From NCBI GenBank assembly GCA_033442325.1, contig JAWQFM010000004.1, positions 1,695,261 to 1,759,260 of the forward strand: a DNA stretch of 64,000 nucleotides, read 5' to 3'. This document shows, piece after piece, positions 22,830 to 51,285 of the stretch (the first letter of the stretch is position 1; every line of letters begins with the position of its first letter). This stretch comes from Salpingoeca rosetta (Eukaryota; Protista; Choanoflagellata). The position numbers and the translations under genes are program-made. Below the pieces are notes generated by a model, which was given only the letters and a program-made list of their open reading frames with translations, did not search any database and had not been told where the DNA came from.

Positions 22830-24841
22830 ATGTTCCGCTGTTGCCACAAGCCCACAGCGACGGTGCCAGTCGCCGCCCATGACGCCGCCGCCTTTGACAT
22901 CTTCATCTCGCTTCGCTTCAGCGAGGCACGAAACGCGGGGAAGGCGCTCCAGCGAGCGCTCGAGGCAAGGGGGCTGAAGGTGTTTCTGTGTGAGGTTCCT
23001 CCAGGCTCGAACATTGCCAAGGTTGTGATTCGAGCGCTGCATGGGTGCCGCATGGCGGTGATCCTTGGCACGCGTACGTATGGCAAAGAGACGGACAGCA
23101 GCTTCAGCACATTTGACGAGCTTCAGTACATTGTTGATCGAAGGAAGCCGTTCTTCCTTGTGAAGATGTGCGACGACTTTGAAGAGCCTGAGGCGCAATT
23201 TCACCTGAGGAGCAACGTGGCATATTTCGCTTGGACGCCCAAAAACGAGGATACAAACATCAGCGTGCCTCCGCCGCTGGTTGATGACATTGTTGGCAAG
23301 TTGAAGGTGAGAGCCTGCATATGCGATGGTGCGAGTATGGACCAAGCATGCGCTCGTGTTTGCATTCGAAGCAACGTTTTCGTGTGTGTTTGGGCCGCTC
23401 ATGAGTTGTGCCTGTGTGCTGTTGTCCTGTTGTTGACTCACATACAACACACTGTCTTCCTTCGCTTGCTTCTGGGTAGGAGCAGACCCCCAACACCCTG
23501 ACCAACGCATCAGGCCAGCAACTGGCTGCCACAACTTCGTTCGACAGCCCACTTTCTGTCTCTGAACCGCCGTTCAGCCCAGGACGCGAGGATGCGAAGA
23601 TGTTTGCCATGGAAGTTGGTCATGAGCCATTGACTGTCAAGCGCGGTTGTAACTGGAAACGGGCGTTGCGCACGGCGTTGGCGGTTGCCATTGTGGTTGG
23701 CGTTGCCGTGGCTGTTCCAATCACGGTGCTGTCTGGAGGTAGCGGGAACGGTCCCGACGGGCCTGGAGGAGGTCCCGACGGGCCTGAAGGAGGCCCCGGA
23801 GGGAACATGAGCAACGCGTCCCTTCCAACAACCACCAGCTTGCCGACTACAATCAACGGTACCACAAAGGCGACTTTGGCTGCAGCCGGAACTGGAACGT
23901 TTGGTCAGCTTGGGCCAACAGCAGACAAGTGGCTTGGCGGCGTGCTGGCAAGCAACGGGCTGATCTATGCCGCGCCTTGGTACTCGCCTTCCGTGCTCAT
24001 CATCAACCCCAGCACCAACACCGTCGACACCACCACCATCTCGGGACTTGGAACGGATCCAGCCAAGTGGGCTGGTGGGGTGATGGCACACAACGGCCTC
24101 GTTTACATGTTCCCTTCAAACAGGCAGTCGATGCTCATCATCGACCCAGACACCAATGCGGTTGACATCACGAGCATCCACTCACTTGGCTCGACGAGCA
24201 ACAAGTGGTATAGTGGCGTTGTGGCCAGCAACCAACTCATCTTCGGCATCCCGTTGTATGCCACGTATGTGCTGATAATTGATCCGAAAACCAGCACCGC
24301 CGACATCACGACGATGGCAGGACTGTCGAGCGGGACGCACAAATGGTATGGTGGCGTGCAGGCAGACAATGACCTCATCTACTGCATCCCCGTGAAAGCT
24401 TCTTCTGTTCTTATCATCAACCCAGGGTCCTTGACGATGGACCTCACGACCATCAGTGACCTCAGTTCCACAGGCAGCAAGTGGTATGGTGGTGTGCTGG
24501 CAGAGAATGGCTTCATCTACACCATCCCAGCCTACTCAGCGACGATACTCGTCATCGACCCAGCCACAAACGCGACCAACGAGCTTGTTGTTGCACCCGC
24601 ACCAGGCTCCTTGAAGTGGAATGGCGGTGTGCTCGCACCCAACGGCAACATCATTGGCATCCCGCACGACTCTCAATCAGTCCTTGTCCTTGATCCAACA
24701 ACTAACACCACCGACACAACAACCATCAGCAATCTTCATGGCTCTGCCAAGTGGCTAGATGGTGTGCTTGCTCCAAACGGCCTCATCTACGGCATTCCAC
24801 ATGATGCTGAGTCCGTCCTCGTCATCGATCCCGGCTGCTGA
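22830..24841 (+). CDS. TIR domain - transmembrane helix - 7-repeat beta-propeller (predicted type II receptor, about 612 aa)
   Basis: Exon 1 is 22830-23306 (FDIFISLRFSE..ALEARGLKVFL..MAVILGTRTYG..STFDELQY..KPFFLVKM = TIR). Phase-0 intron 23307-23479 (GTGAG..TAG). Exon 2 (23480-24841) is open and in frame with TM ALAVAIVVGVAVAVPITVL and seven propeller repeats ending VLVIDPGC*. Confidence 0.8.
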
Positions 24842-25539
24842 CGCATGTTTGTGCGTGTGTGTGTTTGTGGTGTTTTTGTGTGTGTGTGTGTGTGTGTGTG
24901 TGTGTGTGTGTGTGTGTGTGTGTGTGCTTGCGTTTGATTGCTTCTCGAAAGCATGTGAGTGCTTCTGTTTGGTGCTGGGCCGGCCGCCCTTTGTGTTTGT
25001 TCCTCCTGCCTTTGTGCGGTCCTTTTCCGCCGCTGCGCCGCACCTCGTTCATTTCCCACCGTGCAAGCACGTGTTGTGTATGCTCTGTTATGTATGCTTG
25101 ATTCGTTTATCAAGTGTACAGAAATGCACCCTGCCACCAATCTCAAATGCACTCACGTGCTCCAGCAAGTGCAGGGAGAGCAAGTGACAAGAATGAGTCA
25201 CCATTCATGTTAACAGACCACAAGCATAAAGGGCACAACAAGCAAGCAACGTGTGAAGCAAACATAACCTTTATGTGAACGACGCACACACACACACACA
25301 CACACACTCACACACACACACACACACACACACACTCCCACACTCACACACACACCACACAGAGCACGTTGTTTTCTCACAGTCTGTTTTTCCACAATGC
25401 ATCCCAACGCGACCATTCGCCAGTCCTTGAAGCTCCTGGTTGAGCGAGCGCGTTCCAAGCTGCATGGGAAGATGCGTGACATTCACGGGTGGTGGCGAAC
25501 GCGAAAAGGTGCCTGCCACACAAAAGGACAGCACACCAC

Positions 25540-49713: not shown

Positions 49714-49959
49714 TGATGATGGCAACTGTAACAGTGGGCGGCGCTCACGGAAACCTTGTTTGCTGCGCAACGTTGTGATGTGCTGCCCTTGCCACTTGTG
49801 CTGTACAATAGAGCGAAAGAGAAGAGTGTAGGAAAGGAAGCGAGAAAAGGGAAGCGATCTGTGGGAGCTTTGGCACACCACATCAACTTCCACGTAATTA
49901 TTTTTTTCCGTCTTCCTCCACAACCCCAAACAAAACGCAAAACAAGACCACCAGCCAAG

Positions 49960-51285
49960 ATGAGGAGTCTGACGCCAGCCACTGTCGACGTTTTAGCCGT
50001 TTTGGTTGTATTCCTGGTTGTGTGCGTGTGCCGCGTCGAGGCCATCGCCACACCACCAACACCAAACAGGGCCAAGGTGGCGCAAGATGATAGCGGCGCG
50101 ATGCACGTCAATTCGAGTGACCCAGCGAATCAGCCCGTGTTCCTGAATGGCGTGGACGTCGTTTCGGAGGTTCAAACGCTGCGTGGAACCGTAGCGGCAC
50201 AGCAGAGCATGCTGCAGGCGTACCAGTCAACTGTTGAGGCGCAACAGAGCATGATCGCCGCACACAACAGCACGCTTCAAGCCCAACAGAGCACGATCGA
50301 AGCTCTTCGAGGCAGGGTGTGTGAGGCGACTGCCAGCACGTTTGGGCAGCTTAGCTCAGCAGGAAACAACAAGTGGCGTGGCGGGGGTGTGCTTGCCAGC
50401 AACGGTTTCATCTACGCTGCCCCTTACGACTCGCCCTCCGTGCTAATCATCGATCCCAGCACCAACACCGTTGACACGACCACAATCTCCGAACTTGGAA
50501 CAGACAGCTACAAGTGGGGTGGTGCTGTGCTGGCACACAACGGCCTCATCTACATGTTCCCATCAAACAGGGAGACAATGCTCATCATCAATCCAGACAC
50601 CAACACCGTTGACACCACAAGCATCCACTCGCTGGGATCTGGTGGAGGCAAGTGGTGGAGTGGTGTGGTGGCCAGCAACGGCCTCATCTTCGGCATCCCC
50701 TTCTTTGCCACCTCTGTGCTGATCATTGATCCAGATACCAACACAGCCGATATCACCACGCTGTCCGGACTGTCGAGCCAGGCATACAAATGGTATGGCG
50801 GTGTGCAAGCAGACAGCGGCCTCATCTACTGCTTTCCCTTCGTAGCTTCTTCTGTTCTCATCATCAATCCAGAGTCTCTTACAATGGACCTCACCACCAT
50901 CAGCGGCTTGGGCACGGGCAGCAAATGGTTTGGTGGCGTAATCACTGGCAACGGGCTCATCTACACCATCCCAGCATACTCTGCGACGACACTTGTCATC
51001 AATCCGGCCACCAACACCACCGCCGAGCTTGTCGTTGCAGATGCAACCGGCTCTTCGAAGTGGATCGGCGGCGTGCTTGCACCCAATGGCAACATCATTG
51101 GCATCCCACACACCTCCCCATCCGTCCTCATCATCGATCCAACCACCAATGCCACCGACACCACGACCATCAGCGACCTTGCAGGCGATAACAAGTGGTG
51201 GGGTGGCGTGCTCGCTCCAACCGGCCTCATCTACGGCATCCCAGACCATGCTGATTCCGTTCTCGTCATCGACCCGGGATGCTGA
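49960..51285 (+). CDS. Secreted 7-repeat beta-propeller protein with a coiled coil; closest paralog of the TIR receptor ectodomain
   Basis: Intronless. Signal VLAVLVVFLVVCVC, QDDSGAMHVNSSDP..LNGVDV, heptads AQQSMLQ/AQQSTIE, seven repeats, ends VLVIDPGC*. Confidence 0.9.
   Translation: MRSLTPATVDVLAVLVVFLVVCVCRVEAIATPPTPNRAKVAQDDSGAMHVNSSDPANQPVFLNGVDVVSEVQTLRGTVAAQQSMLQAYQSTVEAQQSMIAAHNSTLQAQQSTIEALRGRVCEATASTFGQLSSAGNNKWRGGGVLASNGFIYAAPYDSPSVLIIDPSTNTVDTTTISELGTDSYKWGGAVLAHNGLIYMFPSNRETMLIINPDTNTVDTTSIHSLGSGGGKWWSGVVASNGLIFGIPFFATSVLIIDPDTNTADITTLSGLSSQAYKWYGGVQADSGLIYCFPFVASSVLIINPESLTMDLTTISGLGTGSKWFGGVITGNGLIYTIPAYSATTLVINPATNTTAELVVADATGSSKWIGGVLAPNGNIIGIPHTSPSVLIIDPTTNATDTTTISDLAGDNKWWGGVLAPTGLIYGIPDHADSVLVIDPGC

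Follow-up and report, generated by a model that had tools for sequence, protein, structure and literature searches.

A diversified putative binding face in a lineage-expanded propeller family of Salpingoeca rosetta

The WD40 repeats of the fungal protein HET-E carry pairs of hypervariable residues in the D-to-A loop and the B-C turn, on the 'top' interaction face, and FEL gives a strong omega above 1 in this protein (PMC1805685). Toll-like receptors have been described as previously undetected in Salpingoeca rosetta (PMC6040629). Here we describe a propeller family of this choanoflagellate that we compare with both systems, based on a stretch of 64,000 nucleotides (the window; assembly GCA_033442325.1, contig JAWQFM010000004.1) in which an initial annotation had compared two genes and proposed that fixed positions in each blade vary on one ligand-binding face under positive selection.

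The two genes, A and B, are both on the forward strand. The gene A product as compared with gene B is encoded by the ORF at 23600-24841; its propeller domain, which we aligned and modelled (domain residues 1-330), occupies 23849..24838, with the W of the KW motifs at domain residues 28, 74, 120, 166, 212, 257 and 302. Gene B (49960..51285; 74% identity to gene A in tblastn) is a canonical family member whose translation comprises a signal peptide, a conserved N-terminal module, a Gln-rich coiled coil, a Cys, the propeller (50293-51282), a C-terminal Cys and the stop. Their comparison is untouched by either assembly gap: one of 195 N (26979..27173), intergenic with respect to the comparison, lies 2.1 kb beyond the gene A stop, and one of 649 N (47870..48518) lies 1.4 kb upstream of the gene B ATG. 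The propeller domains are 74% identical, in keeping with the earlier description of very similar scaffolds. The residue after KW does differ in six of seven blades, with the letters originally quoted (gene A/gene B by blade: L/R, A/G, Y/W, Y/Y, Y/F, N/I, L/W), and the residue pair that follows the proline, also said to differ, does so in five of seven blades and at 9 of 14 residues (WY/YD, SN/SN, LY/FF, VK/FV, AY/AY, HD/HT, HD/DH). Thus 15 of these 21 positions differ, versus 57 of the other 288 domain positions (Fisher p = 1.5e-6).

These genes belong to a large family. The S. rosetta genome holds more than 100 members (113 matches), at least 90 of them full-length and nearly all of these without an internal stop. 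The expansion is lineage-specific, with 55 of 61 S. rosetta sequences in a single clade. The S. rosetta protein PTSG_06848 has a 100% identical counterpart on contig C18, in agreement with the species assignment. Four full-length paralogs lie in the window, two of them on the reverse strand and outside the range first annotated (23890-51285): paralog C (15158..16393; 411 aa) has the architecture of gene B and 55% identity to the gene A propeller, and paralog D (12822..14690; start codon uncertain) carries a divergent propeller (40% identity) on a Gln-rich repeat stalk that is much longer. The canonical layout is a signal peptide, a conserved module, a coiled coil and a Cys, with another Cys at the C-terminus, and the most likely reading is that most members are secreted on a coiled-coil stalk. 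Exact look-up of the ORF products of gene A (two starts), gene B and paralog C in a protein collection gave no match. In a word-based search of proteins, the S. rosetta paralogs listed reached no more than 49% identity; those of 60-75% identity present in the genome were absent, perhaps because they lack annotation or have been annotated with different ends. Our literature search found no papers describing the expansion, the coiled-coil stalk, the Cys clasp or a TIR-linked member.

The fold of the family is a seven-bladed propeller of the DUF5074/DUF6923 type, not WD40. The only Pfam match of the gene A propeller is DUF5074 (PF16819; 39.9 bits, cut-off 27.2); gene B alone has no match above threshold, yet shares the identity to gene A given above. 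Another S. rosetta paralog, P0009, matches DUF6923 (PF21959; 35.6 bits, cut-off 27), bacterial homologs likewise pass the DUF6923 cut-off, and the Atlas neighbours of the family are DUF6923 clusters of haptophytes, diatoms and phages. We rejected a WD40 identity, as no WD40 family appeared in Pfam scans of genes A and B at E up to 1. Both DUF families are without known function, and a literature search found no papers on DUF6923. A bacterial homolog has a weak match to the Pfam family Tachylectin (21.8 bits, cut-off 29.8). The AlphaFold2 model of the propeller (alignment A1; pLDDT 94.1, pTM 0.91) has seven blades of four strands each, or 28 strands, with an N-terminal strand (14-18) that closes blade 7, and the repeat signature is KWxGGVxAxNGxIYxxP...VLxIDPxTN.

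To the two fixed positions per blade originally proposed, a wider comparison adds more. The KW+1 and post-proline sites are variable as claimed, but the list was incomplete: among 49 of the full-length copies, the five most variable positions per blade are KW-3, KW-2, KW+1, P+1 and P+2 (entropy peaks at registers r-3, r-2, r+1, r+16 and r+17). With 3.0-3.5 bits, the pair directly preceding the K of KW, missing from the earlier list, has the highest entropy, followed by P+2, P+1 and KW+1. In gene A, the hypervariable codons start at 23921, 23924, 23933, 23978, 23981, 24059, 24062, 24071, 24116, 24119, 24197, 24200, 24209, 24254, 24257, 24338, 24347, 24392, 24395, 24473, 24476, 24485, 24530, 24533, 24608, 24611, 24620, 24665, 24668, 24743, 24746, 24755, 24800 and 24803. 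At these 34 sites paralogs are 22-26% identical to one another, versus 68-79% elsewhere, and all 49 have a distinct combination of variable-site residues. The registers are nearly fixed in some blades (Ala75, Tyr167, Ser90); KW+1 is Ala in 40 of 49 paralogs in blade 2 and Tyr in 43 of 49 in blade 4.

The residues found at the variable sites are far from a random draw of codons. Aromatics account for 46% at KW+1, 45% at P+1, 26% at KW-2 and 22% at P+2, whereas codon frequencies predict 8-9% and the remaining domain positions have 6.5%; the exception is KW-3, which is 5% aromatic and mainly Ser, Gly and Asn. Tyr and Asn are each 9-fold above expectation, and most of the variable positions draw on an alphabet of Tyr, Phe, Trp, His, Asn, Ser, Gly, Asp and Arg. 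Variability is greatest at the same registers in 94 external homologs, mostly bacterial or metagenomic, where P+1 is aromatic-rich too.

In the AlphaFold model, KW-3, KW-2 and KW+1 form the end of the D-A loop and the start of inner strand A, and P+1 and P+2 lie in the B-C loop, just past the Pro at the end of strand B. From the strand topology, we infer that the five positions share one face of the propeller, opposite the chain termini. The proposal of a single variable face is therefore upheld as far as the D-A and B-C loops of every blade of the model are concerned, with placement on the face by blade topology only. The opposite face also has moderately variable positions (r+7 and r+27, omega ~0.5). 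Taken as a predicted feature of the aligned and modelled domain, a diversified putative binding face is well supported.

Such a face could instead be the substrate pocket of an enzyme. Searching PDB chains yielded no sequence relative bar one marginal match, and Foldseek with the model returned seven-bladed propellers, the closest solved folds being virginiamycin B lyase and YncE/YVTN-type propellers (PDB 2z2n, 3vgz and 1l0q; TM 0.69-0.87). Virginiamycin/streptogramin B lyases match the model best (TM 0.78/0.87), and some sources label homologs 'streptogramin lyase'. Nonetheless, a lyase-type enzyme is very improbable here: sequence identity to these matches, 2z2n included, is ~10%, the proteins of the window have no Vgb_lyase Pfam match, and the family is without a conserved catalytic set. 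Specifically, the face is the least conserved part of the domain and has no invariant polar residues fit for catalysis, and the invariant columns contain neither His nor Glu. A signal peptide and coiled coil in ~100 copies are also a better fit for binding heads than for enzymes.

To assess selection, we fitted codon models with our own GY94-F3x4 likelihood code, which reproduces IQ-TREE lnL exactly; the 48-sequence fits exclude paralog D on account of its very long branch. The scaffold is under purifying selection (omega 0.13-0.15). The five-position class has an omega of 0.89 (25 sequences), 0.68 (48 sequences) or 0.63 (pairs), 4-6 times the scaffold value, and the positions named in the initial annotation have a dN/dS of 0.80 (25 paralogs), 0.63 (48; significantly below 1) and 0.53 (14 independent pairs). 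The codon alignment and site models thus confirm a raised dN/dS, but the class does not exceed 1; a tree-free estimate at the variable sites is 0.53-0.63, and with 48 sequences the class omega lies significantly under 1.

Several tests nevertheless point towards pervasive diversifying selection at these positions, as in HET-E or arms-race receptors. On one tree, an M1a/M2a-like test gives an LRT of 73.8 and assigns 5% of sites an omega of 2.5; 13 of its 14 high-posterior sites belong to the five-position class, the fourteenth lying in the same B-C loop. A dual-rate non-parametric test, also on one tree, gives an LRT of 23.3 versus a bootstrap maximum of 9.5 (18 replicates), and 19 of its 32 candidate sites fall within the class of 34 among 321 sites (p = 1.7e-13). 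FEL picks out sites 29 and 255 (p ~0.003), and KW-2 has an omega of ~1.1-1.6 (1.64 in the 25-sequence fit), never significantly above 1, and a pN/pS of 1.24 [0.93-1.76] in independent pairs. However, besides the class values below 1, no individual site remains significant after correction at 5%. In addition, six paralog pairs contain gene-conversion-like tracts, with exchange between whole paralogs, and three segment-specific trees gain ~284 lnL units; with these trees the LRT of the dual-rate test, the only mixture test repeated with them, shrinks to 8.8 and lies within the null range. An M2a-type test alone would have reported strong positive selection, a signal that is lost once the models accommodate gene conversion and varying synonymous rates. 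Furthermore, the same positions vary in distant bacterial homologs, which makes their variability a property of the fold family and not evidence of a local arms race. We regard pervasive diversifying selection as possible but doubtful; the original claim of positive selection at the variable face is unproven, and what is observed is the raised dN/dS.

An omega near but not above 1 is also what relaxed constraint would leave, with exposed, tolerant loop residues varying without functional meaning; neutral variation usually sits in loops, and all homologs show variation at these registers. Because dN/dS at the variable sites is not above 1, loop tolerance does contribute. As the whole explanation, relaxed constraint is distinctly unlikely, since the composition is non-neutral (the excess of Tyr and Asn, aromatics at 45% at two positions) and Ala75, Tyr167 and Ser90 are nearly fixed at the same registers. 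Moreover, the omega significantly below 1 with 48 sequences means that the variable sites are still filtered by selection. The diversity may stem from positive selection or from loosened constraint inside a binding-competent alphabet.

Gene A differs from the canonical layout upstream of its propeller. A probable first exon (22830..23306, forward strand; ATG at 22830, 159 codons) encodes an N-terminal TIR-like domain with matches just below the Pfam cut-offs for TIR_2 (E = 5e-6; 27.4 bits, cut-off 28) and TIR (20.3 bits, cut-off 21.3). It is followed by a probable phase-0 GT...AG intron of 173 nt (23307..23479), which has the donor GTGAGA at 23307 and a polypyrimidine tract with the acceptor AG at 23478-23479. 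The downstream open frame begins exactly at 23480, right after this AG, and exon 2 (23480..24841) encodes a linker, a transmembrane helix (~23663-23734; hydrophobic maximum 2.75 at residue 25), a Pro/Gly- and Thr-rich stalk, the propeller and the stop. Genomic comparison is consistent with this structure: many matches to the 36 TIR paralogs of the genome stop at residue 158-159, the proposed end of exon 1, and the gene A linker and transmembrane segment are 59% identical to an exon at C4:551353-551505, on the same strand as the closest TIR paralog and 1.4 kb downstream of it. With exons 1 and 2 searched separately, splicing of the TIR-like exon to the propeller exon is probable from the sequence signals. 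The arrangement was found at no other propeller gene in the genome when same-strand upstream TIR exons were sought, and contig C25, which carries the two other paralogs that align through the transmembrane region, has no TIR matches.

We propose that this S. rosetta-expanded family combines a rigid scaffold with five paralog-specific positions per blade. Attachment to the stalk, and to the membrane in gene A, would be on the face opposite the variable one, so that the variable face would point outward. There it may bind ligand, its residue alphabet being typical of binding sites; the family would then amount to a germline-encoded set of heads that differ in what they bind, one of which, in gene A, has been placed on a TIR-TM chassis. 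Judged from the paralog comparison and the model, it is likely that the variable face is a ligand-binding face and the family a germline repertoire of differing heads. Binding itself, the class of ligand and TIR signalling by gene A are presumed. A more speculative extension, which we hold only tentatively and think rather unlikely as a whole, is that ~100 secreted, coiled-coil-mounted, aromatic-rich heads recognise bacterial or glycan ligands (prey, cues, pathogens) with their diversity kept by selection, and that gene A connects through its membrane anchor to a cytoplasmic TIR as a non-LRR, inverted-topology analogue of a Toll-like receptor. If true, a unicellular organism closely related to animals would possess a germline-encoded repertoire for recognition. 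The family may in any case be a candidate recognition layer, being large, lineage-expanded and extracellular, with a CDR-like variable face and one TIR-TM member.

Oligomeric recognition proteins of the collectin, ficolin and scavenger-receptor kind share with the S. rosetta family, as read from its sequence, a signal peptide or anchor, a coiled-coil neck, a C-terminal globular recognition head and many paralogs with different heads; in collectin- and ficolin-like proteins, however, the head is a C-type lectin or fibrinogen domain rather than a propeller. Gene A resembles Toll-like receptors as a single-pass membrane protein with a repeat-built ectodomain and a TIR-like domain. Toll-like receptors have an LRR ectodomain, a transmembrane segment and a C-terminal TIR, whereas gene A is inverted, with an N-terminal TIR-like domain, type II orientation and a propeller ectodomain; given these differences and the TIR_2 score below its cut-off, we do not identify gene A as a Toll-like receptor.

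A further parallel is with the Podospora anserina NLRs HET-E, HET-D and HNWD. As the initial annotation noted for HET-E, these have hypervariable residues at analogous positions: both systems have seven blades with per-repeat hypervariable residues in the same two loops, D-A and B-C (PMC1805685). In contrast to HET-E, which is NACHT-bearing and cytosolic and has WD40 repeats, the S. rosetta proteins are extracellular and have no WD40 Pfam match, and Pfam scans of gene A, its upstream exon and genes B, C and D gave no NACHT match. At the corresponding residues HET-E has a strong omega above 1, and the S. rosetta class has 0.63-0.89, with mixture tests positive on one tree. HET-E has highly similar internal repeats under concerted evolution, whereas the S. 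rosetta blades are individualised; because blades are 52% identical within one protein versus 65-74% for the same blade across paralogs, HET-E-like repeat shuffling does not operate here. We reject identity as a HET-E-type NLR. Diversity is instead spread over ~100 whole-gene paralogs. The family would be a second, independent propeller with hypervariable D-A and B-C loops besides that of fungal HET-E, a version of the same design that uses a different repeat and owes its diversity to duplicated genes rather than shuffled repeats.

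Gene A (23600–24841, forward strand), the putative TIR-TM-propeller gene, and gene B (49960–51285, forward strand) are both real and intact. Gene A encodes 413 aa, counting from its earliest in-frame ATG, and gene B 441 aa; their propeller domains are 74% identical overall. The residue letters quoted for them in the initial annotation are exact, and the positions it named do show an excess of differences: 15 of the 21 differ (KW+1, P+1 and P+2 in seven blades), compared with 57 of 288 elsewhere (Fisher p = 1.5e-6). A tblastn search of the window with gene A recovered two more paralogs beyond the range first considered, C (15158–16393) and D (12822–14690), both on the reverse strand. 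One assembly gap (26979–27173) follows gene A at a distance of 2.1 kb, and the other (47870–48518) precedes gene B by 1.4 kb; both genes and all comparisons are free of them. Between genes A and B sits an intronless ROCO-type open reading frame (29498–33331, reverse strand, 1277 aa) with a Roc/Ras GTPase, a weak COR-A and a degenerate kinase, and long (CA)n/(TG)n microsatellites beside family genes (11478–12197 and 21321–21984) yield spurious His/Thr- or Cys/Val-repeat reading frames.

The same pattern reaches the whole family. We calculated Shannon entropy per position across 49 full-length propeller domains, the four window copies included, counting each register (r) from the W of KW. Most scaffold positions fall below 1 bit, whereas the two residues before the K (r-3 and r-2) mostly reach 2.6–3.5 bits, r+17 (P+2) 2.1–3.5 bits, r+16 (P+1) 1.3–3.1 bits, and r+1 (KW+1) 2.2–2.6 bits in five blades; in blades 2 and 4, r+1 is an almost invariant Ala and Tyr, respectively. 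Variability is moderate at r+19, r+7 and r+27. The five-position class (KW-3, KW-2, KW+1, P+1, P+2) comprises 34 sites, at which pairwise identity is 22%, versus 68% elsewhere (26% versus 79% in the closest 25 paralogs), and the combination of residues at these sites is unique in each of the 49 paralogs.

These residues are often aromatic, as the initial annotation had noticed. The share of F, W, Y and H is 46% at KW+1, 45% at P+1, 26% at KW-2 and 22% at P+2, compared with 8–9% expected from codon frequencies and 6.5% in the rest of the domain; only KW-3 departs from this trend (5%), being mainly Ser, Gly and Asn. At the variable sites, Tyr and Asn each exceed expectation about 9-fold; these sites are diverse yet still constrained. 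A ligand-binding role for the variable face, predicted from this composition, is well supported.

To place these positions we used an AlphaFold2 model built on the 49-sequence alignment (pLDDT 94.1, pTM 0.91), which has seven blades of four strands. Strand A begins at the W, B ends at the Pro, C is VLxID and D is TxD, with the N-terminal strand 14–18 acting as strand D of blade 7. These boundaries place r-3, r-2 and r+1 where the D-A loop ends and the inner strand is entered, and r+16 and r+17 within the B-C loop. The D-A and B-C loops of a four-stranded antiparallel blade share one face; strand order therefore supports the proposed placement of all five variable positions on one propeller face. 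By the same topology, the A-B and C-D loops (r+7, r+27), both termini and two conserved Cys would lie on the opposite face, from which the stalk would then exit. The top Foldseek matches are virginiamycin B lyase (TM 0.78/0.87, ~10% identity) and other seven-bladed propellers.

Positive selection, which the initial annotation had proposed, is less secure. We estimated omega three ways: from the 25 closest paralogs and from 48 paralogs with our own GY94-F3x4 code, which matches the IQ-TREE likelihood (-15130.66), and from 14 independent pairs by NG86. Omega for the whole domain is 0.20 (25 paralogs) and 0.19 (48), and for the scaffold 0.13, 0.14 and 0.15 by the three routes. The three positions first singled out are elevated above this scaffold but do not exceed 1 (0.80, p = 0.10 against 1; 0.63; 0.53), nor does the five-position class (0.89, p = 0.29 against 1; 0.68, below 1 with p = 2e-6; 0.63). 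Protein-level evolution at the variable sites is thus 4–6 times faster than in the scaffold. The best single candidate for omega >1 is KW-2, absent from the original list (1.64, p = 0.07 against 1, with 25 paralogs; 1.09 with 48); pN/pS in independent pairs is 1.24 (0.93–1.76) at KW-2, 0.53 at KW+1, 0.72 at P+1 and 0.82 at P+2. Site-wise FEL points to sites 29 (blade 1 KW+1) and 255 (blade 6 KW-2), both at p ~0.003; among the 34 a-priori sites they hold up at an FDR no stricter than 10%.

In a PAML-like comparison, M2a outperforms M1a with high significance (LRT 73.8; omega 2.5 at 5% of sites), and 13 of the 14 sites it flags belong to the five-position class. A non-parametric test with synonymous-rate variation gave an LRT of 23.3; the highest value in 18 parametric-bootstrap replicates was 9.5. 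However, six paralog pairs share tracts of 35–71 consecutive matching polymorphic sites (permutation maximum 37), and a separate tree for each third of the domain gains ~284 lnL units. With segment-specific trees the dual-rate LRT drops to 8.8, inside the null range, and class omega is ~0.75; omega >1 at the variable sites is not robustly demonstrated. Conversion-like identical tracts occur in the locus pairs L001/L003, L007/L008, L014/L019, L004/L020 and others, and gene A shares one with the copy at C4:1608066-1609025.

The canonical order, shared by gene B, by paralogs C and D and by the majority of loci, is signal peptide, ~30-residue module, coiled coil, Cys, propeller and final Cys. Within the N-terminal regions of canonical members (49960–50290; 16393–16150, reverse strand; N-termini of L002–L050), the module after the signal peptide is conserved, with consensus EVTLVEDDAGAFHINTSDP.SQPVFVNG.NV and no Pfam match. 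The stalk is a Gln-rich heptad coiled coil whose length and repeat number differ greatly among members; that of paralog D has ~10 copies of a 21-residue unit. A Cys precedes the propeller in 44 of 48 sequences, directly before the closing N-terminal strand, and another is the protein's last residue in 49 of 49 (domain residues 11 and 330 in gene A numbering, window ~23879 and ~24836). The pair occupies the place of blade 7's would-be C-D loop, and we infer from the model a disulfide clasp on the face away from the variable positions.

Gene A departs from this plan: its first Cys is replaced by Ala (the last is kept), and a transmembrane helix with a Pro/Gly- and Thr-rich stalk takes the place of signal peptide and coiled coil. 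In the TIR-like reading frame upstream on the same strand (TIR_2, 27.4 bits; cut-off 28), codon 159 is followed by a GTGAGA donor, and gene A's open frame opens exactly at an AG acceptor (23478–23479). The genome has 36 TIR paralogs, and the matches of many stop at residue 158–159; 1.4 kb downstream of the closest (C4:552868-553290, 70% identity), on the same strand, is an exon that shares 59% identity with the juxtamembrane and TM segment of gene A. The TIR-exon and TM-exon arrangement at both loci suggests a shared gene structure, and gene A looks like a TIR-TM chassis bearing a propeller head, with the exon joining predicted from sequence. Five of the 36 TIR-like paralogs (C35:480193, C35:543303, C23:384316, C4:552868 and window 22830) lie within ~5.5 kb of a propeller-family gene (rough chance expectation ~0.7); those other than gene A's lie either downstream or on the other strand, and so are neighbours rather than fusions.

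A six-frame search of the genome gave 113 matches, nearly all without an internal stop, with ~40% of family copies on the window's own contig; at least 90 are full length (45–75% identity to gene A). Loci L030 (C4:1470187-1471095), L046 and L047 are probable pseudogenes, being truncated or interrupted by an in-frame stop. A near-identical pair on separate contigs, L037 (C34:414290-415255) and L040 (C14:1311323-1312288; dS 0.012), has four replacement differences, two of them on r-3 sites, and three silent ones; it reflects either recent duplication or assembly redundancy. The annotated S. rosetta protein PTSG_06848 matches contig C18 of the window's assembly at 100% identity. The S. rosetta paralogs retrieved from the public protein collection reach at most 49% identity to gene A, versus ~45 genome copies at 60–75%; the closest clade may lack annotation or have been annotated with other boundaries.

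When 94 external homologs are added to the tree, 55 of 61 S. rosetta sequences group in one clade, indicating a lineage-specific expansion. Most external homologs come from bacteria or metagenomes (Leptospiraceae and Spirochaetaceae MAGs at 46–52% identity), with related clusters in haptophytes, diatoms and phages. Their variability is highest at the same registers, so the pattern is a property of the fold family and not solely of this expansion. We found no sequence-related PDB entry and no paper on the family in a literature search. The repeat is not WD40: in Pfam, gene A matches DUF5074 alone (39.9 bits; cut-off 27.2), and its paralogs and bacterial homologs have DUF6923 matches as well.

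The analogy drawn with fungal HET-E is topologically exact: the D-A loop and B-C turn, which carry the selected pairs of HET-E (PMC1805685), are also the locations of the variable positions in the S. rosetta propellers. The two systems differ in how diversity arises. The S. rosetta blades are 52% identical within a protein, compared with 65–74% for the same blade across paralogs, and the family is without intragenic repeat shuffling; its diversity comes from whole-gene duplication and some gene conversion.
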